Source: Piromyces finnis finn
Lineage: Eukaryota; Fungi; Neocallimastigomycota
Assembly: GCA_002104945.1 (NCBI GenBank)
Contig: MCFH01000007.1
Coordinates: 248,001-312,000 of the forward strand
DNA length: 64,000 bases
Reading direction: 5' to 3'
Part shown: positions 518 through 63,700 of the stretch, piece after piece
Layout of the letters: every line of letters starts with the position of its first letter
Position numbering within the stretch: the first letter of the stretch is position 1
Translations under genes and position numbers: made by a program
Notes under the pieces: generated by a model
What the model saw: the letters and a program-made list of their open reading frames with translations, nothing else
Told to the model about the DNA's origin: nothing
The model's database searches: none

Positions 518-2968
518 ATGACTGATTATATACCAGTAGAAAAAAGTGAAAATAATTTAATTGTAGATGTTAATAATGAACCAGATTATCAACCTGATAG
601 TTTTAAAAAAACATACAATAAAAAAGGAAATAGAGAAGGTTATATTACAATTGCTATTTCATTTATATTATGGACATTATTCTATAAACTCAGTTTAGTT
701 GGTGGTGATTTAGGGTGGATAAAGGATCATTTATTCTTGATTGGTTCATTACTTTTTACATCTTTTCTATCATATAGTGTGATGCTTTGGAGAGTAGCAT
801 TTTTGAGAATTTCAAAAAGATTAAAGCTACTTAGTTATTGTTTAATAATTTTTTCCCTTGTAGGATTTTTAATATATGATCATGGTGAACTTTTTGATTA
901 CCATGGTATGTATAATTTTATGGTATTTTGTTTATTTGTTTTCATTGGAGATGGAATTGCTATCATTATATATTTTTGGTACAAATTATTTGGTAGAAAA
1001 AAGTTCATTATTTCGTTTACTTCATTTATTTTAATTATTGTAGTTATCTTAATTATTTCACTAAGACATTATATGAATATTTGGGGTAATGGTTATCTAA
1101 ATAAAAAAATTGAAGAAGGAGGGCAAAATTGTAAAGTTAGAAGACCAATTCCATGGTTTGATTTACTTCCAAGAGGTACACAGAACTTTTGGACTGGATC
1201 TCAAAGCTGTGCTAGAGAAGAAAAATTTGATGCTTTTTTTGATTCCACTGAAGAAAACAAATTAGTAGTATCTGGTTGTCCAAAAAGTGAAAAAATAACT
1301 TTTATGATATTACCTGAAACTCGTAATTTAACTTTCTATCAAAAGCAAGATGATATTTTTCGAGAATCAGTAATGAGCTTAGCGGAAGAAAAGATATATG
1401 ATTATACCGAGCCCATTAATCTTCCAGATATAGAAGCAGTATATATTACCTGTGGTGAACAAAGCAAATTAGTTACTCGTTTAGCTGGAAGAAGAGTTGA
1501 ACCACAGGTAGACAAAGTGCCAAAAGAAAAATTAAATGTTCTATTGATGTATTTTGATGCTGTTTCACGTAGACAGTTTTTCCGTAACCTTCCTAAAACA
1601 GTTAAAAAACTTGAAAGTCTAAATAATTCAGGTATCATGCATTTAAACCAGTTCTTCCGTTATGGTGTTATTGGTTTTAATACTAATAGAAATTCGTTAG
1701 GATTATTTGCCGGTGTACAATTAGAGAGAGGTAAAAAAGGTGTCCCAATTTGGGAAGATTATAGAAATCATGGATATGTAGCTGGTGCAGCTGATGATCA
1801 TTGTGAAGATTGGGGTATGTATATTATTATTATTTATCATTGTTTTATATTGAAATTATTACTAATTAAATATTTATTTATTTTTTTTTTCATATTTAAC
1901 ATTATTGCTCATTATTTTATTAATATCTTTAAAATATTATGCTTTCGAACCATTTATTTCAATCATATATATACGTTCAATTCATGATATAATTATATTA
2001 TATAATATGTCATATAATTTTATGATAATTTTTTTTTTTTAAAAAAAAATACTTGGATTTCTTAAATTTATGAAAATTTAATAAAAATAATACATTATTA
2101 TGAAATTAAAATGTAAATAGATACAAATTATAACAATCGAACAGAAATATCATTGGATCATGAATTAATCGCTCCATTCTGTTTACCTGAATATCATGAA
2201 CGTACTGGTAATCCACACGGTAATTTCAAAGGTGCATATTCTATTCGTAGACGTTGTATCACTGGTCAATATGTTCACAATTATGTATTAAACTATACTC
2301 GTCAATTTATTGATACTTATGACAGTACAAACCCGTGGTTCTTCCGTTCAAGTTTTATTGAAGGTCATGAAGGTACTGCTGAAGTTTTAAGTTTAATGGA
2401 TGATGATCTTGTTAATTTCTTTGATGGTTTTACTGAGGAAGTTTTAAATCATACTGCAATTTTTATTATGAGTGACCACGGATTACATATGGGTCTTTCC
2501 TATTTATTTTCTGATCAAGGTCGTACAGAACATAAATTACCACATCTTACCACTCTTATTCCGGAACAGTTTTTAAATAAATATCCTGAGTTAAGAACCA
2601 ATTTAGATAATAATGAGCAAAAATTAATATCTGCTTTTGATATTTATGCTACTTTACGAGATGTATTAGATTTTGATATTTTACATGAACCAATGGAAAA
2701 AACAGGAGAAGGAATTGATATTTTAAAAGCAAAAATTAATCATAAAAGATCTTATAATAATCTTAATTATCTTAACGACTATTTTGAAGAAATGGATAGA
2801 CTTAATAAAAAATATCAAATACATATTGAAAAAAGAGATAAAATAATTTATGGACCCGCAGTTGAAAATGCTACAATTGTTTGGGGTAATTCACTTCTTC
2901 GTCATGTTAGCGAAAACAGAACTTGTGAACAAATTATGATTTCTTCAGAAGATTGTGTATGCCATTAA
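518..2968 (+). CDS. DUF229-like / alkaline phosphatase-sulfatase superfamily membrane protein, 2 exons (518-1814, 2121-2968), 714 aa
   Basis: ORFs 518-1987 and 2153-2968 join in frame through a phase-1 GTATGT...TAG intron at 1815-2120. Several N-terminal hydrophobic helices, then the motifs FDAVSRRQFFRNLPKT, IMSDHG, EHKLP and a C-terminal C-x8-CxC typical of DUF229. Confidence 0.8.
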
Positions 2969-5866: not shown

Positions 5867-8134
5867 TTAGTAATACTTGTAAGCTCTCTTTCTTTGTTGA
5901 GTTTCTTCTTCATCAGCACTGTCTTCGACACCAACAGTTTCATCATCGGAAAATTCAATATCAATAATATCTTCATCATCGCTACTAATTTCTTCTTCAT
6001 CAGAAACAGTAACCTTAAGTGGTAAATCTCCAGCGTTAGCACCAGCGAAAATGGTGAATTCACCTGATGGCTTAACAAATTCCATTTCATCAACATCAAA
6101 GTAAGAAAGTTCATGGTTATCAATTAAGACAGTAGTTTCCTTAGTTTCTCCTGGTTGTAAAGTAAACTTATCGAAACCCTTGAATAAACGAACTGGGTAA
6201 TCCTTAACACTTTCTGGGAATGAAACAAAGAACATTGGTACAGCAGCACCAGCAACATCACCAGTGTTAGTAACAGATACAGTGGCATAAATACCATCTT
6301 CCTTCATTTCAGCAGATAAATTAGAGAATTCAAATGAAGTGTAAGATAAACCAAAACCGAATGGGAAGGTTGGCTTAATACCTTGCTTATCGAACCAACG
6401 GTAACCAACGAAAAGACCTTCATCATAGTCATATTGAACTTTTTCTTCACCACCCTTAGTAAGCTTTGGATCGTACTTAACATCGGTTGGGTAATCTTCA
6501 CGTGGAGCCCAAGTGTATGGTAAGTGACCAGATGGGTTGACATCTCCGAATAAGACATCAACAAGAGCGTTACCAGTTTCTTGGCCTGGCATACCAGCAA
6601 AGACAACACCCTTAACCTTGTCTAAGAATGGAACATTGACTGGTCCTGGAGCGTGAATAACAACAATGGTGTTTTCATTAACTGAGGCAACAGCATCAAT
6701 TAATTCGTTACCATGGTGCCATACATCTAAATCAACACGGTCACCTCTACTACCTTCAACGGTGATGTATTCTTCACCAGAAGAAGCTTGAACAAAAACA
6801 ATAGCTAAATCAGCATCCTTGGCGGCTTCAGCACCTCCTTCAGCATCATCTTGACCATAACCAACAATTTCAATGTTTTCTTGTTCAGCTCTCTTTGAAA
6901 TAGCAGAGAGTGGATCAATAACGTATCTGAAATCAGTAGTACCAGAACCCCAACCAAGAGCAACAGTACCGTCAACACATTGGTTATCAGTACAGAAATT
7001 AGTTGGTAAAGCATCCTTACCAATTACAGCAATCTTCTTAGCACCCTTAATTGGAAGGATAGCATCAGCGTTCTTTAATAAAACGTGACTATCAGCTGCA
7101 ACCTTTCTGTTAAGGGCCTTGTTTTCTTCAGTAAGAGTATCAACAGTCAAATTAACTTCTGGATAGCTTTCCATTTGACCTGCCTTAAATAAGGAACGAA
7201 TGATACGTAAAGAAGCATCATCTAATCTTTCTTGAGTAAGAATACCAGCATCAATATTTTCTTGAATGTGTGGACCCCAGAAACTGTCACCAATGTAATC
7301 TGGACCCCAGTACTTACCACCTGGCATGTTCATATCTAAACCAGAGGCAAAACTGTTGTCACCATCAAAAACAGACCACCAATCGGACATAATAAATCCT
7401 TGGAAACCAATTTTTTCCTTTAAGTAATCATTTAAAATTCTCTTATTTTGAACTGAGTAAGTACCATTAATAGCATTGTAGGAAGACATAATAGAATCAG
7501 CGGAAGCATCATTAACAACGCGAATGAATGGGTTGATGTAAACTTCCCAAAGAGCTTGTTCTGGAATGTTAGAAGAAGAAGAACCACGGTTCATTTCTTG
7601 GTCATTACCAACGAAGTGCTTTGGGGTAGCAATAACACCTTGTGATTGAATACCCTTAACAACTTCAACACCACATTGACCAACATAGTATGGATCTTCA
7701 CCAAAACCTTCCCAAATTCTTCCAGCAGCTGGAGCACGTTGAATATTTAAAGCTGGACTTAAAGCAGCATTAATACCTCTTTGGTAGAATTCGTTACCTT
7801 GGGCTTCACCAACCTTACGAAGTAAGGTTCTATCAAAGGTGGCAGCTGTGTTAATAGCAGCTTGCCATGAGGTGGCAGAACCATTACCAAATCTAACACC
7901 AGCTGGTCCATCTTGAAGGCAAATACCCTTGAATCCCTTTCTTTCAATTGGATCAATGGAACCAACACAAACACCTTGCATGTTTTCTCTACCAGTGGTA
8001 AGAGCAATCTTTTCTTCATTAGTTAAATCAGCAACCCATTCTCTGGCTTTAGCGTCGGCTTCTTCCCAAGTCATAGCAAGGGTCTTAGAAGCGCAAAGAA
8101 GAGCAACAGTGGATAAAACAGTATTGAATCTCAT
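5867..8134 (-). CDS. Secreted GH3 beta-glucosidase (copy 1), 755 aa, intronless, Fn3-like C-domain and acidic tail, no dockerin
   Basis: Signal peptide MRFNTVLSTVALLCASKTLA; motifs CLQDGPAGVR, GRIWEGFGEDP, KHF, nucleophile motif MSDW, acid/base region SGEEYITVEG, PFGFGLSYT. Confidence 0.95.
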   Translation of the reverse strand: MRFNTVLSTVALLCASKTLAMTWEEADAKAREWVADLTNEEKIALTTGRENMQGVCVGSIDPIERKGFKGICLQDGPAGVRFGNGSATSWQAAINTAATFDRTLLRKVGEAQGNEFYQRGINAALSPALNIQRAPAAGRIWEGFGEDPYYVGQCGVEVVKGIQSQGVIATPKHFVGNDQEMNRGSSSSNIPEQALWEVYINPFIRVVNDASADSIMSSYNAINGTYSVQNKRILNDYLKEKIGFQGFIMSDWWSVFDGDNSFASGLDMNMPGGKYWGPDYIGDSFWGPHIQENIDAGILTQERLDDASLRIIRSLFKAGQMESYPEVNLTVDTLTEENKALNRKVAADSHVLLKNADAILPIKGAKKIAVIGKDALPTNFCTDNQCVDGTVALGWGSGTTDFRYVIDPLSAISKRAEQENIEIVGYGQDDAEGGAEAAKDADLAIVFVQASSGEEYITVEGSRGDRVDLDVWHHGNELIDAVASVNENTIVVIHAPGPVNVPFLDKVKGVVFAGMPGQETGNALVDVLFGDVNPSGHLPYTWAPREDYPTDVKYDPKLTKGGEEKVQYDYDEGLFVGYRWFDKQGIKPTFPFGFGLSYTSFEFSNLSAEMKEDGIYATVSVTNTGDVAGAAVPMFFVSFPESVKDYPVRLFKGFDKFTLQPGETKETTVLIDNHELSYFDVDEMEFVKPSGEFTIFAGANAGDLPLKVTVSDEEEISSDDEDIIDIEFSDDETVGVEDSADEEETQQRKRAYKYY

Positions 8135-41276: not shown

Positions 41277-43494
41277 TTAATCATCAAAAGTAACATGAGT
41301 ACTTTTAGCGTTTGGATCAATATCACGGAAGAAAGCACCATAGATTTTATGTTCCTTCTTCTTAACTGTACCACCAAAGTTTCTTAAAGCTTTTTTTTTG
41401 ATAGATAATAAAATTATTAATAATTATATTATAAAAAAATTTTTTTTTTAAAATTATTTATAATTATAAATTTTAAATTATTTATTTTTACCTTCTGGTA
41501 CTTCTTGTTTTGCGTCACGAAGAACGTTTGAAAGTTCACCTGCATGAGCTTTATCATATTGAGTAAATAAAGTATGACTTACACCACTAGAACCAGCTAT
41601 ATATATTTATATATTTTAATTTTTTAATTTTAATTAGTTTTGTTTCTACTTTTTAATTTTTTTAAATGTTATTTATAAATAAGAATTCATAATAATTCAT
41701 TAATACTTTACCTCTACCAGTACGACCAATACGGTGAATGTAATCTTCAATAGTTAATGGGAAAGTGTAGTTTAGAACGTATTCAACATTTGGAATATCT
41801 AATCCACGAGCAGCAACATCAGTAGCAATAAGTAAAGGACAAGAACCACTCTTGAAATTATTTAAAGCTTGAATACGTTGATCTTGTGACTTGTCACCAT
41901 GAATACTAGCAACATTATAACCACGACGTTGTAAGAAGTTTTCAAGACGAACAGCTTCTTTTTTATATAATGCAAAAACAAGAACACGATTATTTCTAGT
42001 TTTATGGTATTTCTTTAATAATTCAATTAATCTAAATTCTTTTTGTTTTGGATCAATAACTTCTACAATTTGCTTAATATTTTCATTAGCATGTAATTCT
42101 GCAGAACCAATTGTTATATGAATTGGATTCTATTTTAAGTTCATATAAATTATTTATAAAAAATATAATTAAAATTATAATTAATATTATAGATTTAAAC
42201 ATTAAAAATTCTTATTTTTTTATATATACCTTTAAAAATTCATGAGCTAATTTTTGAATAACTTGTGGCCATGTAGCAGAGAACATAACAGTTTGACGAT
42301 CACTTCTTGTATTTGAAATAATGTTTCTAATATCCTATTATATTAGATTGTTAAAAAATTATTTTTTAGTATTTCATAACAAAATTTTTAATTTTTCTAA
42401 AATTTAAATTTTATAAAATTTACTTGTTCAAAACCATTATCGAGCATACGATCAGCTTCATCCAAAACTAATAAATTAACATTACTGATATCGCAAGCAC
42501 CTTCATTAATTAAATCTAATAATCTACCTGGAGTAGCAATTAAAATATGAACATTTTTACGAAGAGCATTTTTTTGTTCAATCTTTGGAACACCACCATA
42601 TATACATAAACTTTTGATTCCTAATGGTTCACCAAATTCCTTAGCATTATCATAAGTTTGCATTGCTAATTCACGAGTTGGAGCAACAACTAATACTGAA
42701 ATCTTCTTTGATTTAAATGATTCTGGGTGATTATATTTTAAATGGATAAATGACTAATTCGAATATTAAATAATTAAATATATTAATAATTTAATTCATA
42801 AATATTATTTAAAAAATATAAATAACTTACAGGAACTAAGAAAGTTAATGTCTTTCCTGAACCAGTTTTAGCAATACTATTTATTTTTGTTTTAAAGAAA
42901 CAAATAATTAAATAATTTCATTATTAAAAATTGCTATTTTCAAAATATTAAAAACAATATATATATTTATTAGCTCTAGTTTTATATTTACCCAATACAA
43001 TCCCTTTTCTTCATAACAATTGGCCAACATGAAGATTGAATTGGTGTTGGTTTTTGGAAATTCTTTAAAACGTTTCTAATATCTTCTGGGAAGTTAGAAT
43101 GTTTGAATTCTAAAATTGGACGAATAATTTCATCACCCTTAAATTCAATATTATTCTTTTGCCAGAATTGATTTAATTCAGATTCAGATAAATTTGAAAT
43201 TTCTTCATGTTCTTGATAACTCCAAATACCATTATTTTCATTAGCAATTGTAGAAATTTCACTAGAAGGAATTTCTTTGGATTCTTCCTTTTCTTTCTTT
43301 TCCTTCTTTTCCTTCTTATGCTTCTTTTCTTTTTTTTCCTTTTTTTCTTTTTTGTGCTTTTTTTCTTTCTTTTCTTTCTTTAATTTTTTCTTTAATTGCT
43401 TAATTTCATCTTTTGACTTTTCTGCTTCATTAACTATTTCTAATTTTCTTTTTTTGGTTTCTTCAACAGCTTCTGTTTTTATTATACCTGGCAT
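41277..43494 (-). CDS. DBP3: DEAD-box RNA helicase Dbp3, multi-exon, with Lys/Glu-rich N-terminus
   Basis: [57 protein letters not shown], and the Dbp3-type tail [20 protein letters not shown]. Confidence 0.92.
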
Positions 43495-44202: not shown

Positions 44203-46245
44203 ATGCTTTCCAGTATAATATTGTTGTTTTTCCTAAACATCAGTGTTATATCATGCCTTAATACCTCATTAAGTTTTAAATGTATGTAATTGAAAAAACT
44301 AAAAAAAAAAAAAAAAAAAATAATAAAAATATCTAAATATAATATTATATATAATAATGTAATACTTTACATAATTTAATTTATATCAAATATTATAATA
44401 CTATTATATTTATGTTTTTTATATATTATTTTAAAAAAGATTCTAATATACAATACGAAGAAACAAATGAAGTTCAAATTCTTAGTCTGAGCAACAGAAC
44501 AATTAATTATATTGTAATAAAGAATGAGAATGACGATAACGAAGGTATTTTTCGTCTTGGGATTAAACAAAAGTATAAAAATTATTGTGAAAATGAAAAA
44601 AAATGTAAAATTTTTGCTAAACCATTAAAGAATACTGCTGTTGCAGCAAGAGAAGTAATCCGTTTTATAGAAGTATGCTTTCTTTATTTATAAAGTAAAT
44701 ATTATTATTTTATTAAAAATTAATAATTAATACAATTAATTCTTATCAATAGTTGTTCAATTTTGATGGCAAAAAATCATTAATTAACTATATAATTGGA
44801 AATTATTCTACAACTGGATGTGTTTTTAATAATGCAAAAAGAATTCAGTCTAATGATACTCTCAGCACCGTTCCATTAGATAGTTTATTTTATATTGATT
44901 CATCTCCTTATACTATTATCCAAAATTTTAATGAAGTGTCTATAAAATTTGGAGCTCTTGAAGAAAAAACACCATTAGCTGTATATATATGAAATAGAAT
45001 AAAAATAAAAAATATAGACAAATATTTTAGTGTTTGTTATAATATTTATATATATATCAATTAATTCTTTTATTAACTAAAATAGAGGGCTGAATGGTTA
45101 AAATTTATTTCTGTATTTTATGGTTATGAAAGAGAAGCTTCTCAACTATTCAGTCAAATTGAAGAAAACTATAATTGTAATAAATTCTTAATTAAGAAAC
45201 AAAACCTTCTTGCATCAATGCGTGTTGTATGGCTTAATAGAGTTTCCCAAAATCAAAATCTCTGGGTTATGAATGATTACCTTTATAAAACTGAATTATT
45301 GAAAGATGCAGGTAAATTTTTAGTATAAATAGCCATTATGGATAACATTTCAGAAATATATAAAACTTTATTGAATAAATAAATAACCATATTTAAACAA
45401 AAATTACTCATTTTCAGGTGCAGAAATTTTAACTATAAAAGAAGATAATGTAGAAAGTTTACATAAAGTCTTAAAAAATGTTCATTTTGTTATTGATGAT
45501 ACTGAAATCACAGATGATTCCAATGCTATGGAAGAATTTTATAAAAATTATGAATATAATGATGAAAATTCTAAAAGAGGAGTCAACTTCCTCTCCAATA
45601 AAAATATATTGACTAATGATGGTTCACGTTCATCTACTGGTATTTCATCCTGGAAAGAAGATTATTTAGTATATCCACATCTTGTTTTAGCTGGTAACTA
45701 TTTAATTAACCCAATTTTAAAGATAAAAGATTTATATATCACATATATATTTATTATTATTACAATAATTAATATGTAATAATATAGATTTAATTTACTG
45801 GTTCCACCCAAAATTACCTGTTTCTAAATATTTTAAATTTGAAATTGAACAAAATAATTATGATAATCACTATTGGTTTCGTAATATTGCAAAAAATAGT
45901 CCTATTCATATGACTTCAAACATCAAATGTCCCACTGAAATCCCAGATATTATCACTCAAACAATTTGTATTAATTTAGATGATTATGATGGAGACTATA
46001 GTGACTATTATGCTTTTTATGATATAAAAACATTTTTAAAAAAGTATATACTAATGTACTGGTATTTAATCGCCTTTTTCGGATGTTTTTTGATTGGATT
46101 AATAGCCTCTGTTCACTATATCTATAAAGGAAAAATATTAAGAAAATTAAAAAATAAATTTTCAAATAAAAATATTCACTATGCCAATAATGAAAATGTA
46201 GCTAACCATAATTTTTTTATATTAGAAGATGATGATTTTGAATAA
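44203..46245 (+). CDS. CBA1-like (cobalamin acquisition / Fe-B12 periplasmic-binding fold) type I membrane protein A, 6 exons, 499 aa
   Basis: Exons 44203-44281, 44440-44672, 44753-44980, 45086-45311, 45418-45693 and 45788-46245 sum to 1500 nt in frame. Signal peptide; EEKTPLARAEWLKFISVFYGYE; YNC; WKEDYLVYPHLVLADLIYWFHP; YWFRNIAK; C-terminal TM helix. Confidence 0.78.
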
Positions 46246-48418
46246 ACATATTAAACATTTGGTATATATAAAAGATATCCAGTAAATAATTTCAGGGAGA
46301 AATAATTATAAAACAAGTATTGTACATAAATATATATACAATCTATATTTATAAATTTACATAATAATGTATATTTAAAGATTTTCCAATTCTTATTTAA
46401 TTTTTAATAGATAATGTAATATAATAATATAATAAACATAATTAAATATAAAAGTCTATATCAGAGTTTTAAATCTAATTTATATTATCATTAATTTGCT
46501 ATGCTTATTTTATATTTTTAATCATAATTTGAAGGAATAATAATAACCTTAAGTTTTAATATAAAATATATAATATTCATAATATTGATATTAACAAAAG
46601 ATAATTATTTTATAATAAATGTATATAATCAATAAAAAAGCTTATTATCTAATTATAAATTTTTTAAATTTTATTTATTATATAATTATAAAAGTATAGA
46701 AATAAATCTATATAGGTTTATTTTTTAATTCTGAATTTTTATTATCAAGATTTGTTTATTTATTAAAAATCAAATAAATGAATATATTTGAATTTAATAT
46801 TAATTAAAGTTTAAAAAAAAAATTGAACTCCAAAAAAAGGAAAAATAAAAATTTAAATTAAAAAATTAATATTAAAACTGCGCAATACATACATTTTTTA
46901 AAATGTGTATGGTTAACAATGTAAGTTACAATTAATAAACAAAATTATTTATTATTTATTTTTTTCGAGAAGAGTAAACAATGCTTAATATTAACTATAT
47001 ATAAAAAGAAAAATTATATATTATTTTATATAATGCAATTTATTAATATTAATAATAATAATATTAATAAATATTTCTTATTAATTATCAAAAAGTGTTT
47101 ATTATAAAATTCTATATATTTTTTCATTCCTAATTACTTTATTAATATATAATAAAGCTATTGTTCTATTGTTTTTTTTTTATTTTTACGCTTAATTTAA
47201 TGTCTCATCATGTATTAAATAAACCTACAAATATAACTGAACTGAATTAGAAAACTAATTCATAAACTTTTTTAAATGTTTTTTATTTATTTTAGCATTT
47301 CTATTATAACATACCTATATTAAAAATATTCCTAGTTAAAGTGATATAAAAGTGGCTTTTAAGTCACGTGCAATAAATTCCTAAAAAAGAAGAAAATATG
47401 CGGCTAAATTAAAACAAAAAATAAAGTTTAATTAATAAGATTTTTAACTTTTATTTCAAATTATTTTTCTATAATAGATAAATAAAGAGAATAAATAAAG
47501 AGAAAAGATATATAATATGATGAAAAAGTGTAATAAATATAAAGATATTTGCAAATTAAAAGTATAATTATATACAAATGTGTTTGTATTTGTGATATAT
47601 TTGTATATTAATATTTATTAATAAATGATAAATAAATAATAAAACTAAAAAGTTTAAAATTTTTAGTATATTAAAAAAAAGTTTTTTAATATATTAATTT
47701 ATATTATATAATATATTAAACAAGATTTTTAATTTATTTTTTTAATATAACAAAAATTTTAAACAATTTATTAATAAATGTTTTATAATCATTTTTGCTA
47801 TATATATTTTATTATTAAAAATTATCGAATTATATTACTATTTATTTATTAATTTTTTTTTATTATTTATTAACCCTTTAAAAAAATAAGTTAATATAAA
47901 AGGAAAACTATTTAATGTTTATTGTTAAAAAAAGAAAATTACAAAAGTATTAAATATTTAAATTATAAATTAAAAAAAAAATATTTTTATTACAGATAAC
48001 TATATATATAAAAATTGCTTTTTTTTTTTTTAATAAAAAGACATATATAAAGAATAAAAAAGTAACGTAACAGATTTATTAGATAAACCTATTACAAAAT
48101 TAAATAAGACTATCTTTTAAATATTTATTAATAATATTAAGAATTATTTATTACTCAGTACACTTTAAAATGCTTATTTAATTCTTATTTTTACTATTTA
48201 CATACTATTACATTTAACCTATATATATTTAAATTGTATCTCCTTTGGTTTGTTTTTTTATCAAAAAAGTTATATTTAATATTTTATCGTTATACAAAAG
48301 ACAAAATTTGAATTAAAAAATATTTAAAACCATAAATACATTTACTATATAACTTATATAATAACAAAAATAAAAGAGAAAGTAAAATTAAAAAAAAAAA
48401 GAAAAAGAAAAAAAAAAA

Positions 48419-50473
48419 ATGAAATCTTTATTTTTTACGATCCTCACTTTTACTCAAACTCTGTTAATAAAAGCTTTAAATCCAAATCTTCAATTCAAAT
48501 GTAATTATTAAATATATAAAAAGTACTTAATAAAATAAATATAATTCCTAATTATTATTTTCTTTTTTCACTTTTTCTTCTTCTTCTTTATTTTATTCCT
48601 TTTCTCCAATAAAAAAGATGCAAATACAATTATATATGAACAACCAGTTAAAGAAATCCAGGTTTTAAAATATAAATTGGAAAATGTATATTATATTATA
48701 TATGAAGAAAAATTCGCAGATTCTCCTATTTATCATCGTGGATTAATTGATACATACGAAAAAATTTATTGTTCAGATGGTAATTCTTGTCGTTTCTTCG
48801 CAAAGCCTTTAAAACAAACAGCTGTTGATAGTTCACAAATTATTAGATTCTTTGAAGTAAATAAAAGATACACAATAATAAAAAGTAGAAAATGAATTAA
48901 TGAATTTTTAATTAAATATCATTTTAATAAATTTATTATATCTATTATTTTTTAAGTATTTCGGTACTGATATAATTAAGTACTTAGGTAATGTTGGTCA
49001 TATTACTAGTGGTTGTGCTTATAATAATGCAATGTTTTTAGAAGCCAAGGATAATCCAGAGGTACTCCCAATTGATGGCTTTTTCTACACAGATCCAAAT
49101 TCAAATTTTGTTAAAGCTTACAAGGATCAATCAATTTATTTTAATGGGATTAATGAAAATACACCAATGGCAGTAAGTATAAAATAATAAAAATAATAAA
49201 ACCAGGAAATATAAACAATTAAACATAGTAATATATAAAATATAATTGTAGTTGCTCAAAATAATAATTTTTACATTTGTAAATTTTTTTTTAGAAATTT
49301 GAATGGATTAAATTTATTTCCGTTTTCTATGGATTGGAAAAAGAAGCCACTAATATTTTTGAAAGTGTTTTAGCTCAATATAATTGTAATAAAAACTTAA
49401 TACAAAATAATAAACTCTTTGCAAGTCTTCGTGTTGCATGGCTTACAAGTCAAGCTCCAAATAAAGAAAGATGGTTTACTAATGATTATGAATATGTTAA
49501 AGCATTATTAGCTGATGCTGGTAAATTTAATTCTTTTTAAAAAAATTAATAAAATTGCATAACTGTGATATTATTAAATTATTCATATCAACATTTATAT
49601 TTTTTTTTTTCAATATATTTAATAGGTGCAACATTAAATCACGATAAAGAAATAACTTCATACAAAAATGTTAAAAGTGTTCTTTCCCAATCTCATTTTT
49701 TAATTGATATATCATCTGAATCTTCTGGAGAATATAAAATTACTGACTTTTATGATCAATATCGTTATAATATTAATGATGATTTGTTATTATTAAGAGA
49801 AAAAAACATTATAAGAAATGATGCTGCTCGTTCTGAAGATGGCGTAAGAACTTGGGAGGATGATTACATGGCATTTCCACATCTTGTTTTATTAGACTTA
49901 ATATATTGGTTCCATCCAAGATTATTTGTAGATAACGGATATAATTCAAATATTGTTAAAAAGTTATATGGTGATATTTCTGTACAGAATAGTACACAAG
50001 ATGCAGCTTCTCTTATTCAATCTATTACAAATGGTAATAATACTAATTCTGCAAATAATACTGTAGTTAATGATACAGAAAATACTGAAGCAAATAAATT
50101 AAGAAAAAGAAATCACATTTCTCATAACGTTAGTAGTTATTGGTTTAGAAATATACCAAGAAATACAAACTTTAAAATTATTCCAAAAGAAGGTTGTCCA
50201 TCCGTACTTTCTTCATATGTAACTAACAATATATGTCTTTCTGATGTTTACTTCAAGGGTGATTATGATGAGTATGCTGCTTTTGATGATGTAATGACTC
50301 AAGTAAAGAATTATGCTATTATTTATTATCCAATAATTGGTATCGTTGTTATATTTAGTCTTATTTTAGGTTTTATCTTCCTTAAAATGTTTAGAAAACG
50401 CCAATTAGAAAAGAAGGGTTATAACGACAATCAAAAGATTTTATACGATAATGAAGGTTTTATGGAATTTTAA
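48419..50473 (+). CDS. CBA1-like type I membrane protein B, 5 exons, 536 aa, tandem paralogue of A
   Basis: Exons 48419-48500, 48618-48856, 48957-49172, 49295-49520 and 49626-50473 sum to 1611 nt in frame. Signal peptide; ENTPMAKFEWIKFISVFYGLE; YNC; WEDDYMAFPHLVLLDLIYWFHP; YWFRNI; TM helix YYPIIGIVVIFSLILGFIFL. Confidence 0.78.
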
Positions 50474-54944: not shown

Positions 54945-57900
54945 ATGGCTTCAATTTCACATTATAAAGGAAATAGAAAGTCTATGGCAGATGAACTTTC
55001 TAAAGAAATGAGTCTTCTTCTTAACACTACTTTTGATAATAAACAAACTAAAAAACATAGACATAATAAAAAAAACAGAGAAACTCATCAACCATCATCA
55101 ACAAGTCATTCTTTAAAACCACATAAATCGAAAAAAAAAAATAATAAATTGTATCCACATGAAAATAATATAAATAATAATAGGAATAATGGAAATATAC
55201 CTAATTTAACAAATAATGAATATTCTTATTATATAAATCAAGAGGACAATTATAATTCATATAATATTGAACCAAATTGTTATACAAATGATATTTATGA
55301 TAATAACGACAACTATTCAATTAATAACGGTGAAAATGGTAATTTATTCATAACATCAAATTATTATCCATATTCGGATATGCCAATTCAAAATGAGGAA
55401 GAACCTTATTACGCAACTTCAAATCATTATCCATATTCTGACACACCAATTCAGAACGAAGATAGTAAGCAAATTTTAATATTATATATTTTGAGAAAAG
55501 TAGTGATATATAAAAAAAAAAAATAAAATAAAAAATAAACATTTTTTGTAAACTAATATAATTGCTTTATATATTTTGTATCCATATAAATATATATTTT
55601 TTAACTAATTTATTAAAACTATATAGATTTTTATTATGATGGTAATAATATTAAAAATTTTGAAAATGAATATGATTATTTAATTGATAAGAAACCTACA
55701 TCAAATACAGAATTTGAAAATGAATATAATAATAAAAATTATTCTAATGTTGATTTATCATATTGTGATCAAGATCATATTTCTTCATCCACGAATTTTC
55801 CATTTAATAATTATATTTCTGAAAATAATGAAAATGGTTATAATTCATCAATTCAAGAATATAATAATAGTAATAATAACAATGATAATATATATTTAAA
55901 TTCTGATAATAGTAATAGTATTTTTATTTATATTAATAATGATTATAATATTAGTTAAAATTATATTTATAAATGTACATATAATATAATGATTAATATT
56001 AATTATTTTTTTTTAATATAATATTTAAAAGATATGAATAGAGGTAATATTCAAGCCTCTGGTTTAACAGTTGATTCTATGTTATCACAAACGACACCTC
56101 TAAATTATGAAGAAATACTAAATAACGAATTAAGAAACAAATATAATACCAAAAATCCTTTGTGTTCATCAGATTTATCAAATCCAAATAATGCTTACTA
56201 TAAAAATAATAGAAAAAGACATAATCATAATAACAATGCTAATTATTCAAATTATAATAGAATGGATGAAGAAGGAAATACTTCCAATAATATAGAAGAA
56301 ATAAAAAGAAAACGTTCTCTTGTTAAACCAGAACGGTCGAGGAGAAGAAATAAATATATAAATTATACTCTAGAAAATCCTAATTACGTCATGTTAGAAC
56401 ATAGTTTTGAAGAGAATAATGAAACATACTCAGTTTATCAACATTCCTTAAATAATGATAATAATAATTATAATCAAAGTACATATGTCAATTATGACTA
56501 TGAAAAAAATAATTCTATAATATTAATGACTGAAGAAGAAAAGCTGAAGCGTCAAAGTAATATTTTTGTAAAAAAAAATGCTATTGATCCTGATTTTGGA
56601 AGATCTGAGGAAGTAGAAGAAACTCAAGATGAAAATACAGAATCTTATAAAAAAATATGGTGGACGATGGTATCCAATGCCTGTACATGTTATATACCTA
56701 ATATACTATTAGAAAGATTTAAGAAAACTGATTCTGATGTACAACAGGCATGGAGAGAAAAAGTTACTCTTTGTACTATTATTTTTATTATCTGTATTAT
56801 TTCAGGATTTTTTACTTTTGGCTTAAATAGTATCATATGTAATAATGAAACCACTAAGATTCATTATACCGATACAACCTTTTCTCTTCATGGAGTTGCT
56901 TATGATATATATATTAAGAATTTTAATGAAACTAAGAGACTTCACAGTATAATCAGTGCATCTAAGAATCAAGACATGGGTCAATACTTTTTAGACATTA
57001 ATTCAAAAAGCGCATGTCAGAAAGTTATCAATTATAATTATAATAAAAATAGTTGTTATTCTAAAACTATTGAAACATCCCTTATAAAAGAACATAAAGA
57101 AGATAAGCATTGCTATGAATCAAATGATCTTCTTAAAAATCCTGATATTGATGTAAGAAAGTTAGGAAATGTATACTATTCTTGGGATGATTTAAAAAAA
57201 TTAAGAGATAATAAGGATAGAAAAATGGTAATATATAATGGGAATGTTTTAGATATAACTGATTATCTTTCAACTGGACTGACGACTTTTGGAAGTAAAT
57301 TTACAGATATTATTCGAAATAAAGCAGCTATGGATATAACATATACAATAACGAAAAATAAAAAGTTCAAAAATTCTGTAAAATGTATGAGTGAGATATA
57401 TAAAGTAGGTACTATAGGTAAAAGTTCGTCTGGATGCATTGTAAGTAATATTTTATTAGTACTGACATTTATATTCGTTATTGGGGTAATTTTTATAAAA
57501 TTCTGTATGGCGTTAGTTTTTAATTGGTTCCTTAAATGGAAAATGGGAGATCGTTCAGGTATTATTAAAAAAATATCTGAAGAAGAAAGAAGAATGATCA
57601 AATTAAGAGAAACCAAAAATTTGAATAGCGAAATTAATAGTAACAACAAAAATAATAGAAATAAATTAAGAGAAAGCATTTCTATATCAACTTTATTAAA
57701 TAATAGTACTAATAAACGCATGAGTATGAATATATTTGATGAAACAAATCGTAGAAATAGTACTGGACAATTATCATTATTGAATCATGATAATAATAAC
57801 TCTGAAGATAAAAAAGTTTCCATCAAACAACAAAATAGAAAAAGTATGACAAGTCGATTTTCAATTCCAATGCCAGGAGAAGGTTCTAGAACAAATATTA

Positions 57901-60146
57901 GTAAAAGTAATAGTAACTTCACTTTACCAAGTTATCCAAACCCATTTAGAGCAGATGGCGTCGGTTCTTCTTCTTCTTTAAATGAACTTGTTAAATCAAA
58001 AAGAAACAGTATAAGTAGTTGGGACCCTGTACAGCCATTAACTAACTCTCAAAGTATAAATATTAATAATAATAAGAGAAAAAGTATATTTTCTACTATT
58101 AATACTCCACCATTAGATGCTATTTTTAAGAATACTCAAGTTCATTCTTCCTCATTAATTACTAATAATACTCAAACTAATGAAATAAATTCAAAATCTT
58201 TACCAGAGCCAACTTTACCAAATGTTGGAATATTAGATGAAGACATAATACCAGCAATAACAAATTCTCCAACTAGTAAAAGAATAAGTACTATTCAAAA
58301 TTCTACCAATGACAATAAAATATCAAATATTGGTTTATTAAACAATAATAATAATATAAATACAACTGAGGGAAATGTTGTTATAGGAAAGCCTATTACA
58401 ACAAATTCTACAATTGAAGATTTACTTCATACCATTCTTTTAGTTACATGTTATTCCGAAGGTCATGATGGTATAGCTAATTCATTAGATTCACTTTCAT
58501 ATACAGACTATCCAGATTCACTTAAATTAATAATCGTTATTTGTGATGGTTTAGTCAAGGGTGAAGGTAATGACAAATTAACCCCTGATGTTGTTGTTGA
58601 TATGATTGATCCAGGAGATGGAAGCAATTATCATTGTAATGAACCTGAACCAAAAAGTTATGTAGCAATTGCAGAAGGTAAGAAACGTCATAATATGGCA
58701 AAAGTTTATGCTGGTTGGTATAGATATGCTATAAATGCCTATGATCGTAAAATTCCAATGATTGGTATTGTAAAGTGTGGAACTGAAAGTGAGCGAAATG
58801 GCCCAAAAAAGGAAAAAAAACCAGGAAATCGTGGTAAAAGAGATTCACAAATTATGTTATTAGGATTCCTAAGTAAAGTAATGTTTAATGATCGTATGAC
58901 GGAATTTGATTTTGATCTTTTTACAAAAATTCATGAAATTACAGGTGTTTATGCCGATATTTATGAAAGCATTATGATGGTTGATGCTGATACCATTGTC
59001 GATAAGGACTCTCTTGCTCATTTGGTTGCATGTCTAGTTGAGGATCCAAAGATTATGGGATTATGTGGTGAAACTCAGATTGCTAATAAAACTGAAAGCT
59101 GGGTTACAATGATTCAAGTCTTTGAATATTATATTTCTCATCATATGTCTAAAGCATTCGAATCTGTATTTGGTGGTGTCACCTGCCTACCGGGTTGCTT
59201 CTGTATGTATAGAATTAAATCCAGGAAGGGTGTGCATGGTTACTGGGTTCCAATTCTTGCTAACCCAGCAATTGTTGAACAGTACTCTGAAAATAAAGTA
59301 AATACATTACACAAGAAGAATTTATTACTTTTAGGTGAAGATCGTTATTTATCAACATTAATGTTAAGAGAATATCCAAAAAGAAAAATGGTATTTGTAC
59401 CTCAAGCAACATGTAAAACTATTGTTCCAAGTGAATTCAAGGTTCTTCTTTCACAAAGACGGAGATGGATTAATAGTACTGTTCATAATCTTCTAGAGTT
59501 AGTTCTTGTTAATGATTTATGTGGTACATTTTGTATTTCAATGCAGTTTGTAGTTTTAATGGAATTAATTGGAACAGTCGTATTGCCAGCAGCAATTTTC
59601 TTTACTTATTATTTAATAGGAACTTTCTTTTTTTCTGGATCTAAAAATATAATTTCACTTTTACTTATGGTTCTAATTATGGGATTACCAGCTATCCTTA
59701 TTAGTTTAACTTCTCGTGAAATGAAATATATATTATGGATGATGGTATATCTTTTAGCTCTTCCTATATGGAATTTTGTTTTACCAGTTTATTCTTTCTG
59801 GCATTTTGACGATTTTAGTTGGGGTCAAACACGTATGGTTGAGGGTGAGACAAAAAACAAAAATGATGATAATAAAATGGACAAAGATGAGGTAGAAAAT
59901 AAATTTAATAGTTCGGAAATTATTATGAAAAAATGGGAAGAATGGGAAAAGATTCGAAGAGCAGAATTATTGGCTAATGAATTCTATCTTCATTCTACAG
60001 AAAAGAGTGAAGGTGATATGGGAAATTATACTACTTTTTATAATGAAACTCAACCATCACAAATAAATAGCACAAACAAAAGATATACTGGATCCTTTAA
60101 TAATATTATATTAGATAATCATAATATATATAATTATCATAACTGA
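54945..60146 (+). CDS. Class IV (Chs3-like, division II, no myosin motor) chitin synthase, 3 exons (54945-55464, 55627-55911, 56032-60146), 1639 aa
   Basis: AWREKVTLC; cytochrome b5-like segment VIYNGNVLDITDY; TCYSEG; NRGKRDSQ; VDADT; QVFEYYISH; CLPGCF; LLLGEDRYL; SQRRRWINST; WHFDDFSWG. Two phase-1 introns keep the frame. Confidence 0.92.
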
Positions 60147-60742: not shown

Positions 60743-63700
60743 TTATACACTATAATCATCATCTGGGACATTTAATTCACCATATATTCTTCTCATTCTT
60801 TCTTCTTCATCATTATAATTGTCATCATCACTAGAATCAAACATAGAATTTTCATCATATTCATCATCATATTCTCTTCCTTTCCAACCTCTAGTATTAT
60901 ATTCAAGTACTTCTTCGTTCATCATACCATCACCTGGATCTTCTTCCATTCCAAGAGTATTTGCCATTAATCTTAACCATTCAGAATTATGCCACTGGAA
61001 TCTTTGCTGACGAATTTTTATAACCCATTCATCATTTGTTTCCTAATTTTTATAAATAATTTATATAGTTCATATCAGTTAATAAATAAAATATAATATA
61101 ATATAATATAATATATATTATTATTATTATTACAGCTATAATGTCAAGGCATGTATCACACATTTCTCTTATTTTTACATTTCTATCATATAACAAATCT
61201 ATTAAATAGGATACAATATCTATAAAATTATCATAGTAATTTAATCAATCAATAATATTAATATTTTGGCATAATAAAATAATGATATTTATTGTTTATA
61301 AGATTAATTATTATTTGAAATACACACGTGTCTGAATTAAGAGGACAGTTCTAGTACTCTCATGTAATAAAAACTGATATATAGCGTATATAATTTGTAA
61401 AATTATTTCATCATCTTCTTCCTTACCTAAAAATATTGTTTATATAAGTTATTTTAAAATATGTAAATATAATATAATAATTAAATTAATATTTATTACT
61501 AAAAATTTATAAATATTTAAAAATAAAATAAAATTAATAACATACATATCATTAATGTAATTAATAAAGGTATAATGTCCATTTCAATTACTTTTGGTGC
61601 AATTCCTTCGTCATTTGACATTGTACCTAATAGTACTACATATTGTAATGTTACATCATCATCTTCGCTTAATTGGTTTTCTGATGAAGAATTCTTTTCT
61701 TCATAATAAGAATAATCAGAATCACCCAATGATTTTAATTCTTTATTATCTTGTGCACTAGCTAATGTCTTGGAATTTACACATACCTCTTGAAGTTGAC
61801 TTGCAATTAATTCTAAAAGGTGATATGTATCTGTTAATTTCGCCCAATCAAACTCTTCTATGGTAAGATTAGAAAGAATACCTAATAATTCTACTAATAA
61901 ATCTGGAGTTTTAAGTGATTTTTCTAATAATAACATAATATCATCAATATAATCAAGAAATAACATTTTTGTTGGTCCTTCATGCATTGAAATATTACGT
62001 ATCATTTTAAGTAGAAGTGGATCATGTGTTTTTAATGCACGTTTCATTAAAAATTTAATTCCATGATCTTCACACATACATTCTGCACATTTAATATTAC
62101 ATGCTAAATTAATACCTAATGCAATTAAATCCACATCGACTCTATCACCTTTGGTTTCTAATATCATTTTCATTATCTTTGATTTTATAATTGAAAATAA
62201 ATTTTAAATTAACAATTTGAATATATAAAATATTGAATTCTTCAAATATATATTATTTATTATAAAACAAAAACTATATTACCGTTGGAATAATATCTGT
62301 ATATGAAAAAGCAAATTTATTTTTATCATCAATACTTAATTGATATAATAATTGTATTATATAAGTATAATTTTGTTTTACTTGAATTAATTCACATATT
62401 TTTGGAATAAATCCATATTTTACCATAAGTGTTCTTATTTCTTGATCATGTGAAAGATTAATTAAAAGTCTTAAAATTATATTGAATAAACTTGAATTTT
62501 CTGGTTGTAATAATTTCAATATTTTTGGAAGGAATTCATTTGATAATTCTAAAAATTCTTGTTTATTATCTTTAAAAACACTAAGTTTTTTCAAAAAAGT
62601 AATTATTACTACTAAAAGTTGTGGTAATTTCCGATCTAATAAAAATACTAAATATTTTATTACATCTCGTTTTAACATTTTAACTTCAATAGTTAGATCT
62701 TCTGCAAGATTTAATAATAGATGAAATAATATAAATAAAAGTTGATCTTGTTTCTGTAAAAGAGATTGAAATTTTTTATTTTCATGTTCTAAGTTTTTAG
62801 CTAATTGAGTATTTTCAGTATTTTGCTGATATTTTATTTTTAGATTTTCTAAATCTTCTTTCCATATTTTTTCACGGCTAATTTCTTGATCTGCAATTTT
62901 TAAACACATATCTCCTATCTTTTGGGAAGTAATTATTGGATGATATATTGAATAATTTGAGAAACAGAAAAATATATATATAATGTTTGTAACTAATTCT
63001 AATGATTTTTTTCCATCCTCTCTTAATACACGGGCCAAAGCACTAACAAATAATTCTATTTTTTAATAAAAAGAAATTATAATTTTTGCATATTATTATA
63101 GAAAAAGAAATATATTTTCATTAATAAATGTATTATTAATCCCATAATTAAAATTCATTATTTATAAATTATTAAATTATAAATTATAATTTAATGACAT
63201 TTTTTAATAACATATTTTTATATTATATTTTAAAGTAATTAATTACCATCTCCTAATAAAATTTCCATATTTTCTGGTACTTTAACTAATTGCAACAATA
63301 ATCTTGTACTCCTAATTTTATCATCCATGTCTTCATATAATAAAGATATATAATCATCTAATTTTTCAATATATGCTTCTTCCTATTTATTATAATTATG
63401 AATAATATCTAATTAATATTTCTTTAAATAAAAGTTATAAATATATCAACTTTACCTCAAATTTATTTTCCTGTATTTGTATCATTTGTTTTTTCAAAGT
63501 ATGCTTATCAGGATCACCTCCACACATTGACATTTTTCTTTTTTGTAAATAGTAAAGCTGTTGCTCAACATCATTTATTCGTGAAGGATGAATTAATTTA
63601 CATTTATCTACTAATTCTTTAGCTAATTCTGAAATATCACTATTTGCTGATAAAGATTTGATTTTGATACTGATATTATAATAGTAATATTTATATATTG

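Follow-up and report, generated by a model that had tools for sequence, protein, structure and literature searches.

A tandem pair of CBA1-like membrane proteins with a predicted BtuF-type fold in Piromyces finnis, a fungus from a group in which no B12 enzymes are reported

Two neighbouring genes of Piromyces finnis, a zoosporic and very AT-rich fungus, raise the question of what can be bound by proteins resembling CBA1, which is required for cobalamin and pseudocobalamin uptake in Chlamydomonas and Phaeodactylum, in a host reported to be devoid of B12 enzymes. A sequence-only reading of the window (the whole stretch of 64,000 nucleotides that was analysed) had proposed that both are surface-anchored receptors which scavenge B12 made by rumen prokaryotes. 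Here, we suggest that nutritional B12 is probably not what these proteins handle; one possibility is haem, which the fungus cannot make.

Both genes are spliced and transcribed

The following features were assigned to the locus:

44203..46245, + strand: gene 1, g1-type CBA1-like protein of 499 aa, start to stop codon, six exons, GT..AG splice model
44203..44281, + strand: gene 1 exon 1, hydrophobic leader, likely signal peptide (residues ~1-19); phase 1 end before GTATGT
44440..44672, + strand: gene 1 exon 2, N-terminal strands of the binding domain; KPL motif, equivalent of CrCBA1 P118; joint 44672/44753
44753..44980, + strand: gene 1 exon 3, remainder of the N-lobe, ending ...TPLA; joint 44980/45086 in contigs
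45086..45311, + strand: gene 1 exon 4, RAEWLKF..FYG.E, long backbone helix, YNC, RVVWL, DAG
45418..45693, + strand: gene 1 exon 5, C-lobe, W-K-E-D-Y..PHLVLA (pocket loop); joint 45692/45787 (cut +1)
45788..46245, + strand: gene 1 exon 6, DLIYWFHP, 20-residue linker, YWFRN (45871-45885), Cys-containing stalk
46045-46113, + strand: gene 1 exon 6, C-terminal part, membrane helix, followed by cytosolic tail (46114-46242) and stop
46246..48418, no strand: AT-rich 2.2-kb spacer separating the paralogues
48419..50473, + strand: gene 2, g2-type CBA1-like protein of 536 aa, start to stop codon, five exons
48419..48500, + strand: gene 2 exon 1, moderately hydrophobic leader, phase-1 donor; joint 48500/48618 in contigs
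48618..48856, + strand: gene 2 exon 2; joint 48856/48957 in contigs
48957..49172, + strand: gene 2 exon 3; joint 49172/49295 in contigs
49295..49520, + strand: gene 2 exon 4, KFEWIKF..FYG.E, YNC, RVAWL, DAG; joint 49519/49625 (cut +1)
49626..50473, + strand: gene 2 exon 5, C-lobe with W-E-D-D-Y..PHLVLLDLIYWFHP (from 49853), 73-residue N/T/S-rich insert, YWFRN (50138-50152)
50312-50386, + strand: gene 2 exon 5, C-terminal part, membrane helix, preceded by a Cys stalk and followed by tail (50387-50470) and stop

Two spliced genes had been proposed, and both are confirmed as real, spliced and transcribed. They could be rebuilt from GT..AG introns, and eight of the nine introns are present in joined form, at the coordinates modelled, in contigs assembled from four runs of three studies, the runs being listed as probable RNA ('RNA?'). 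Contigs of four runs join exons 2-6 of gene 1, and joints for all four introns of gene 2 were likewise seen in four runs. Intron 1 of gene 1 (44282-44439) adjoins a poly-A run and no joint for it was found among the contigs; we infer its position from the matching intron of gene 2 and from the orthologue P0003. Four introns are common to both genes in position and phase, while gene 1 has one further intron. No third copy was found in the window by tblastn, and the spacer contains neither an ORF of at least 40 aa nor an Rfam family. Patchy high-depth contigs were observed within it, at 46403-46602 and 47803-48002.

Both products are type I membrane proteins

Identity between the two proteins is 34% (blastp E 3e-84). 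Each starts with a hydrophobic stretch, pronounced in gene 1 (Kyte-Doolittle 2.3-2.8) and only moderate in gene 2, and hydropathy places one membrane helix near the C-terminus. In gene 1 this helix spans residues 434-456 and leaves a tail of 43 residues; in gene 2 it spans residues 484-508, with 28 residues after it. The predicted layout of a likely signal peptide, a large ectodomain, a single C-terminal helix and a short tail was thus borne out. Every motif quoted earlier could also be located in the spliced products, namely RAEWLKF or KFEWIKF, FY, YNC, W-x-(E/D)...PHLVL-x-DLI...FHP and YWFRN. Both are type I membrane proteins with a short conserved cytosolic tail, which in g2-type proteins reads NEGF-V/M-E-F/I. 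Their ligand-binding domain, of class III (BtuF/FhuD-type), is exposed either to the outside or to the lumen of the secretory/endocytic system. Since algal CBA1 is localised largely in the ER, surface exposure of the fungal pair is only putative.

The pair very probably belongs to the CBA1-like family and has a predicted BtuF/FhuD-type fold

A profile built from 32 bacterial PF01497 proteins matched both products (83 bits for g1, over model positions 9-376 of 385, and 64 bits for g2), whereas with Pfam's own PF01497 model neither the exons nor the orthologues gave a match even at E 10. CrCBA1 likewise has no Pfam match. When P0003 was compared with 5.8 billion sequences, bacterial PF01497 proteins were found at E 1e-7 to 6e-10, and the likeness to Bacteroidota-type binding proteins seen earlier in the motifs was upheld. 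In the ESM Atlas the nearest clusters are 'periplasmic binding protein' of Zoopagomycota and Mucoromycota (feature score 0.95), followed, by shape, by streptophyte F12P19-7 and Bacteroidota binding proteins. 

AlphaFold models of the orthologues P0005 (g2-type) and P0003 (g1-type) both reached pTM 0.74, and the two-lobed BtuF/FhuD-type fold that had been anticipated was indeed predicted. Foldseek on an orthologue model gave E 5e-8, and VIA-align placed the orthologue models at Z 16-17 against solved class III binding proteins over ~260-280 residues. The insert matching the N/T/S-rich one of gene 2 has low pLDDT in the P0005 model. Together with the motif match to published CBA1s, established by manual alignment to sequence text in a paper's supplement, these results make the assignment of both family and fold highly probable. 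The pair is a further member of a family whose fungal genes have been known since 2023, when CBA1-like sequences were reported from Allomyces, Spizellomyces and Gonapodya (in the supplement) and from Rhizophagus, Rhizopus and Phycomyces (Sayer et al. 2023); no name from the Neocallimastigomycota stands in the published CBA1 tables.

The two genes are old paralogues

P0003 is the g1 orthologue (44% identity). For g2 the orthologues are P0005, from Anaeromyces robustus, the closest named one (65%), and P0006 (64%), together with two metagenome loci, L090 (67%) and L091 (61-72% over two segments). The Anaeromyces protein already carries the label "periplasmic binding protein". Since orthologues of each type form separate clades, g1 with P0003 and g2 with P0005, P0006 and P0002 (SH-aLRT 90 and 92), the duplication is old: within the eukaryotic CBA1-like family the genes are two paralogues, each of a type that is found in more than one genus of anaerobic fungi.

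Anaerobic fungi carry many bacterial genes and, among the matches listed, the non-fungal ones are only bacterial, as would be expected if a rumen bacterial binding protein had recently been acquired by horizontal transfer instead of a eukaryotic CBA1 being inherited vertically. That these matches include no eukaryotic CBA1s is explained by the word prefilter of the search, which passed 53 to 533 candidates in the two region searches and was capped at 8000 in the full-length one. However, in a tree of six fungal proteins and 82 bacterial sequences, without eukaryotic CBA1s, all six fungal proteins form one long-branch clade outside the bacterial sequences and nested in none. The genes have four or five spliceosomal introns and encode a eukaryote-style leader, stalk, membrane helix and tail, and the nearest ESM Atlas clusters are fungal. 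In addition, W255 is shared with eukaryotic CBA1, as is the spacing from W to P: each of the six fungal proteins has a spacing of 7, as do published CBA1s when counted by eye, compared with 6 in 73 of 112 bacterial relatives. Recent transfer is thus very improbable.

Evidence for and against a cobamide ligand

The ancestry of the family points to cobamides. A cobalamin riboswitch lies upstream of the binding-protein gene at 18 of the 80 genome loci sampled for the nearest bacterial relatives, and at 16 of these its distance from the ORF is 23-262 nt; such a riboswitch also precedes P0030, the best bacterial match of the region search, and P0032. The rumen is rich in cobamides. These observations, the role of CBA1 in algal uptake and the retention of most conserved CBA1 positions, among them W255, W394 and D408, all speak for receptors importing B12 from rumen prokaryotes for the fungus's own B12-dependent enzymes. 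However, published surveys of Neocallimastigomycetes list no enzyme that depends on B12. In the paper behind the earlier premise of B12-dependent enzymes in early-diverging fungi, no cobalamin-related protein was found in any of four Neocallimastigomycete proteomes, and P. finnis is named as having MetE and no B12 enzymes (Orlowska 2021, PMC8085122), which counts against B12 scavenging; this absence refers to literature on related species and to eight protein families, bacterial-type B12 enzymes gained by transfer lying outside the survey. Moreover, Neocallimastix lanati kept growing over four passages when cyanocobalamin was left out (Wilken 2021), and land plants keep CBA1-like genes without any use of B12. 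Two of the four residues surrounding the B12 modelled into CrCBA1 are altered as well: the equivalent of F395 is K, E or D in each of the six fungal proteins, whereas 78 of 82 bacterial relatives have an aromatic residue there, while that of E396 is E, D or N as compared with E in 80 of 82. The earlier proposal of B12 uptake for own use is therefore quite doubtful.

The same family evidence would also suit cobamide binding for non-nutritional ends, such as detecting neighbouring bacteria or methanogens or denying B12 to competitors, and the conserved tails of g2-type proteins suggest coupling to cytosolic machinery. We consider this improbable, since it has no precedent in the CBA1 family and the pocket changes at F395 and E396 apply to it equally.

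Structure comparison has no power to tell the ligand class: Z was 14.0 for BtuF, 14.3-15.1 for the haem binders ShuT, PhuT, IsdE, HmuT, BhuT and RhuT, and 15-17 for siderophore binders, and differences of ~1-3 units are not diagnostic. The top PDB structure and profile matches, CeuE, YiuA, YfmC and HtsA, bind siderophores or iron-citrate; most solved class III binding proteins take an iron chelate (ferric siderophore or citrate) or another non-tetrapyrrole ligand, and the annotation 'iron complex transport system substrate-binding protein' is attached to some bacterial relatives. Nevertheless, such names are generic (K02016-type labels), and the closest sequence relatives are linked to B12 on both sides, through CBA1 and through riboswitch-controlled binding proteins. 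An iron chelate or another non-tetrapyrrole is thus a rather unlikely ligand.

A possible role in capture of a tetrapyrrole

Haem is essential for N. lanati, whose haem pathway is incomplete (Wilken 2021), and the lineage, which needs external haem, responds to soluble haems and porphyrins. Because no B12 enzymes or need for B12 are reported, external haem is required and two of four B12 residues are changed, we suggest that the proteins may have outlived B12 metabolism by taking another job. The cleft between the two lobes would capture a tetrapyrrole-type molecule released in the gut by plants or prokaryotes, and the anchored protein would hand it on by tail-steered endocytosis or to a putative partner transporter, as already proposed for algal CBA1. 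We give this explanation as a whole, with its leaning towards haem, a probability of about 0.4. As for the ligand alone, haem or a porphyrin is a tentative candidate, ranked slightly ahead of a cobamide of any use, which seems unlikely; some other molecule is quite conceivable, at somewhat less than even odds.

Comparison with known systems

Algal CBA1 (Phaeodactylum Phatr3_J48322, Chlamydomonas Cre02.g081050) and the CBA1-like proteins reported from other fungi have the same signal peptide, two BtuF-like lobes and single C-terminal membrane helix. Shared motifs are (R/F)(A/E)EW(I/V)KF..F(F/Y)..E, YNC/FDC, V-x-W, DAG, W-x-E...VL-x-D and WFRN followed by Cys. Of 16 highly conserved CrCBA1 positions, manual alignment shows nine to be unchanged in all six fungal proteins and three more to be conservative or variable; K78, N216, P251 and F395 are replaced and E396 varies. 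The anaerobic-fungal proteins differ in a low-complexity insert of 20 to 73 residues before WFRN, in being two ancient paralogues, in tandem in the Piromyces window, and in belonging to a lineage reported without METH or any other surveyed B12 protein.

The closest relatives by sequence search are the bacterial BtuF-like 'LARAEWIK' proteins of the PF01497 family (Bacteroidota, Ignavibacteriota, Chloroflexota; E down to 6e-10, 21-32% identity), which share ETPLARAEWIKF, DAG and VL-x-DLI..HP. They are soluble or lipoproteins of 375-445 aa, and their operons also encode a FecCD permease and an ABC ATPase. The fungal genes, in contrast, are interrupted by introns, encode a membrane anchor and lack a known permease partner, and the aromatic residue following the pocket Y/W is lost in the fungi. 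BtuF of E. coli (1N2Z) and Vibrio (5YSC) has the same fold (Foldseek TM by target 0.64) at ~9-12% identity, a match no better than that of haem or siderophore binders. The haem-binding class III proteins also share the fold, without specific sequence similarity to the fungal pair, and the ligand of the ShuT/PhuT/IsdE type is one that this fungus must import.

The best ESM Atlas structural neighbours are the streptophyte CBA1-like proteins ('Plant/F12P19-7 protein'; TM 0.75-0.81 by target), which at ~395-400 aa are shorter than the fungal pair. Plants live without environmental B12 while the rumen, in contrast, is cobamide-rich, and the plant proteins are said to retain the pocket residues that are partly changed in the fungal pair. 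The paradox is the same, namely a gene retained without B12 enzymes in the lineage, and for the plant proteins a new tetrapyrrole ligand has been suggested (Sayer et al.). The pair kept by Piromyces thus stands as a fungal parallel to the land plants.

Two complete, spliced genes lie behind the ORF fragments

The region is very AT-rich (G+C of about 15-25%), and its ORF track gives fragments only. Gene models were built from all three forward frames by splicing at GT..AG sites, which gave two complete genes in the following setting:

Genes in the region (window positions, strand, description)
42988-43494, minus strand: first exon of a DEAD-box-type helicase, with a Q-motif-like PTPIQ and a Lys/Glu-rich tract; no Pfam match on this piece
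44203-46245, plus strand: gene 1, 6 exons, 499 aa, complete
48419-50473, plus strand: gene 2, 5 exons, 536 aa, complete
56034-60146, plus strand: class IV-type chitin synthase, one 1370-aa ORF
61517-63038, minus strand: kinesin-associated protein (KAP), a flagellar-transport gene, split over at least two ORFs

GH3 enzymes are also encoded in the window; the helicase, chitin synthase and KAP neighbours are not transport-related. The products of genes 1 and 2 are 34% identical in an end-to-end alignment (E 3e-84), and four introns are common to both genes, with identical codon and phase. Gene 1 has an extra intron (45694-45787), which interrupts the coding sequence between PHLVLA and DLIYW. No third copy was found in the window by tblastn.

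The sequence-only reading had proposed two spliced genes behind the ORF fragments, and this is borne out by contigs from four public sequencing runs of three studies, listed as 'RNA?', that is, probable RNA with the library not on record. Assembled contigs of 1.4-1.8 kb carry joined exons with 0-1 mismatch, and GT..AG joints occur at exactly the modelled coordinates for eight of the nine introns. The remaining one, gene 1 intron 1, adjoins a poly-A tract and was passed over in the joint search; its support consists of the counterpart intron of gene 2 and of the g1-type orthologue P0003, whose sequence spans the junction. In these contigs gene 2 had a word depth 4-7x that of gene 1, which is a poor gauge of expression. 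That the genes, their splicing and their expression are real is well supported.

High word depth, up to 188, was also seen in the probable-RNA contigs over two patches of the AT-rich spacer between the genes (46403-46602 and 47803-48002), where there is no ORF of at least 40 aa and no Rfam match; one contig links 47983 back to 46794. The signal may stem from repeats or from a non-coding transcript that is missing from the annotation.

Both proteins are membrane-anchored and have conserved tails

A leader, a large ectodomain, a single C-terminal TM helix and a short tail had been read from the sequence, together with a series of motifs. All these motifs are present in both proteins, and the layout agrees with hydropathy, the signal peptide being putative: the N-terminal stretch is strongly hydrophobic in gene 1 and moderately so in gene 2, and one clear membrane helix lies near each C-terminus, followed by a tail of 43 (gene 1) or 28 (gene 2) residues. 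Terminal helices appear also in the AlphaFold models of two orthologues, P0005 (g2-type, Anaeromyces robustus) and P0003. Between the leader and the membrane helix, a domain of about 335 residues is followed by a linker, YWFRN and a short Cys-containing stalk.

Linkers from FHP to YWFRN (window positions, strand, description)
45811-45870, plus strand: gene 1, 20 residues
49926-50137, plus strand: gene 2, 73 residues, N/T/S-rich, with several N-x-S/T sites

The segment matching the gene 2 insert has a pLDDT below 50 in the P0005 model. In the printed diatom CBA1 (cobalamin acquisition protein 1) sequence only about 10 residues lie between the corresponding FHP and WFRN positions, in contrast to 20 and 73 here.

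The cytosolic tails (window 46114-46242 for gene 1 and 50387-50470 for gene 2) are conserved across genera, as seen with P0001, P0002, P0005, P0006 and P0003. The g2-type C-termini read N-E-G-F-(V/M)-E-(F/I), with a few additional residues in P0002, and the g1-type ones are an acidic stretch with Phe (FFILEDDDFE or EFIKLEEDIF). The tails lack any evident YxxPhi or dilysine motif of the classical kind; their conserved sequence suggests a putative sorting or adaptor-binding signal.

The ectodomains have a predicted class III binding fold

Membership of the PF01497 (Peripla_BP_2) family had been expected, and this held for homology but not for a direct match. With a threshold as loose as E 10, the Pfam model matched neither the nine exon translations nor the orthologues P0002 and P0003; Chlamydomonas CBA1 (CrCBA1) is likewise without a Pfam domain. 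A profile built from 32 bacterial PF01497 proteins, however, scored 83 bits against spliced gene 1 (model positions 9-376 of 385) and 64 bits against spliced gene 2. In a 5.8-billion-sequence database P0003 matched bacterial PF01497 proteins at E 8e-8 to 6e-10, and a mixed profile matched solved class III binding proteins at E 6e-8. With the last exon of gene 2, phmmer found nothing among PDB sequences, and exhaustive phmmer over 1.84 billion representatives returned four clusters and no others, each of them anaerobic-fungus-like; taken by itself, the C-terminal half has diverged too far for a homologue search.

The periplasmic-binding-protein fold, a further expectation of the sequence-only reading, was found in the AlphaFold models of P0005 and P0003 (pTM 0.74 each), which represent orthologues 65% and 44% identical to the window proteins and not the window proteins themselves. 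Both models have two alpha/beta lobes and one long connecting helix (residues 196-219 in P0005, 193-216 in P0003). Alignment to class III binding proteins gave VIA-align Z of 16-17 over about 260-280 residues for both, and a Foldseek E of 5e-8 for an orthologue model. A class III binding fold is well supported as a prediction. Ligand class cannot be read from structural rank, since the Z-scores of B12, haem and siderophore binders overlap, and this route was rejected.

Bacterial BtuF proper is soluble in the periplasm, works with a BtuCD-type permease and is often under a cobalamin riboswitch, whereas the two proteins here carry a membrane anchor. Neither a FecCD nor an ABC gene adjoins the two genes, and no cobalamin riboswitch or any other Rfam family was found anywhere in the window.

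The proteins are assigned to a CBA1-like family

Kinship with CBA1, likewise proposed from motifs, was supported by eye against the sequences printed in the supplement of Sayer et al. 2023, where the same motif series recurs. Matching motifs are FEWVKFFSVFFNKE, FDC, V-L-W, W-F-E...NVLAD and SWFRNV followed by Cys in Phaeodactylum, RAEWIKFVSVFF...YNC in Syssomonas and RAEYIKYVATFFNRE in Chlamydomonas. CrCBA1 also shares the layout of signal peptide and C-terminal helix. The spacing from W to P in the pocket loop is 7 in the printed CBA1s and in all six fungal proteins (the two window proteins, g1-type P0003 and g2-type P0005, P0006 and P0002), and 6 in most bacterial relatives.

In the ESM Atlas, the nearest entries to the A. 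robustus protein were Zoopagomycota and Mucoromycota clusters labelled "periplasmic binding protein" (feature score 0.95); by shape, streptophyte F12P19-7 proteins were nearest, followed by Bacteroidota binding proteins including CobD/CbiB fusions. Word-indexed searches with P0003 (full length, residues 170-400 and residues 172-262) yielded fungal orthologues and PF01497 proteins from bacteria, with no eukaryotic CBA1 among the matches, which we read as a limit of the word prefilter and not as absence. One apparent spliced eukaryotic match (L152) was rejected, as it consists of two tandem bacterial genes.

The CBA1-like assignment is well supported. Genes of this kind were already on record: other fungi have published CBA1-like genes (Sayer et al. 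2023), although no Neocallimastigomycota name occurs in the published CBA1 tables, and the closest named orthologue, A. robustus BCR32DRAFT_265621 (65% identical to gene 2), already carries the UniRef label "Periplasmic binding protein".

The duplication is old and the bacterial relatives point to a cobamide ancestry

Descent was assessed in a tree of 82 bacterial relatives and the six fungal proteins. The fungal proteins form a single long-branch clade outside every bacterial clade. A recent transfer from bacteria is therefore unlikely, as the introns and the protein architecture also indicate. The g1-type proteins (with P0003) and the g2-type proteins (with P0005, P0006 and P0002) fall into two distinct clades, both of which also contain proteins from other sources, and the duplication is therefore old. 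A conserved tandem arrangement was considered and rejected: in A. robustus (MCFG01000035.1) the g2-type gene has no g1-type copy within 10 kb, so the tandem layout of the window is not shared with that fungus. A Serinc gene lies downstream of the A. robustus gene.

Further g2-type orthologues are present on two metagenome contigs of 22% G+C. One (L091) still has the intron that corresponds to gene 2 intron 4; the other (L090) has an uninterrupted gene body (residues 39-536) and is therefore either a contig derived from a transcript or a gene with few introns.

The operons of the bacterial relatives comprise a binding protein, a FecCD permease and an ABC ATPase. A cobalamin riboswitch lies directly upstream of P0030, the best bacterial match of the region search, and of P0032. 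Among 80 genome loci collected by the shared LARAEWIK pattern, a cobalamin riboswitch on the coding strand was found in 18, including 8 of the 20 top loci, and 16 of these 18 lie 23-262 nt before the ORF. Other Rfam families were absent from the 80 loci, save two upstream Flavo-1 sRNA matches (L054, L061). One locus (L044) has two cobalamin riboswitches facing apart, at 673-877 (minus) and 966-1173 (plus). Proteins of the LARAEWIK subfamily of PF01497 occur widely among Bacteroidota, Ignavibacteriota and Chloroflexota; in a large Bacteroidota group the gene follows mfd and a histidine-kinase gene and has no riboswitch. Algal CBA1 is needed for uptake of cobalamin and pseudocobalamin.

Residues of the putative pocket are partly changed

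Sixteen highly conserved CrCBA1 residues (K78, P118, L136, E206, F214, F215, N216, E218, P251, V253, W255, G289, W394, F395, E396 and D408) were compared by manual alignment to the printed sequence and by column counts. In this alignment P118, E206, F214, E218, V253, W255, G289, W394 and D408 are kept in the fungal proteins, L136 (F/L) and F215 (Y) are changed conservatively, and K78 (Y), N216 (G) and P251 (L/M/I) are replaced. The F395 position is K, E or D in all six fungal proteins, whereas 78 of the 82 bacterial relatives have an aromatic residue there; at E396 the fungal proteins have E, D or N, and 80 of the 82 have E. In CrCBA1, W255, W394, F395 and E396 ring the modelled B12 (Sayer et al.), and of these W255 and W394 are kept here. 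The pocket loop itself reads as follows:

Pocket loop, W-(K/E)-(E/D)-D-Y-(L/M)-x-(Y/F)-P-H in all six fungal proteins (window positions, strand, gene)
45651-45693, plus strand: gene 1
49853-49895, plus strand: gene 2

At this position the bacterial relatives have, in contrast, (Y/F)-W-E-S-G-x-x-H-P-D. In the fungal loop Tyr and His are invariant, and Met is present in five of the six proteins. Residues of these three types can serve as haem-iron ligands, as they do in other class III proteins.

Haem or porphyrin as candidate ligand

A surface receptor scavenging B12 made by rumen prokaryotes had been proposed. Eight cobalamin-related proteins, METH among them, have no homologue in four Neocallimastigomycete proteomes, and Piromyces finnis is named as a fungus without B12 enzymes and with MetE (Orlowska et al. 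2021, PMC8085122). N. lanati grew through four passages without cyanocobalamin; it did not grow without haem, and its haem pathway is incomplete (Wilken et al. 2021). With the F395 and E396 positions changed as well, it is doubtful that the fungus scavenges B12 for itself.

On the simplest account, the lineage would have lost B12 metabolism and retained an ancestral cobamide receptor, which was then duplicated and in part remodelled. Haem or a porphyrin is the most attractive new ligand, as a candidate only. Water-soluble haems and porphyrins have been known since 1986 to trigger zoospore release, and no receptor is named in the literature surveyed. We give roughly one chance in five to the reading that, after loss of B12 metabolism and of haem synthesis, members of the CBA1 family took over as the missing haem/porphyrin receptors, so that one paralogue, or both, would import essential haem and/or sense the haems and porphyrins of zoospore release.

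If the ligand is haem, these genes would be the first haem-acquisition candidate in a biotechnologically important fungal group; if it is still a cobamide, the claimed B12-independence of anaerobic fungi would need revisiting. CBA1 is the sole known component of B12 uptake in eukaryotic microbes. The present host is culturable, reportedly needs external haem and responds developmentally to porphyrins, and therefore the question of what else the CBA1 fold can bind is directly testable in it. CBA1-like genes persist in land plants, which do not use B12, and another tetrapyrrole has been proposed as the new ligand there (Sayer et al.); the anaerobic gut fungi look like a second, independent case.
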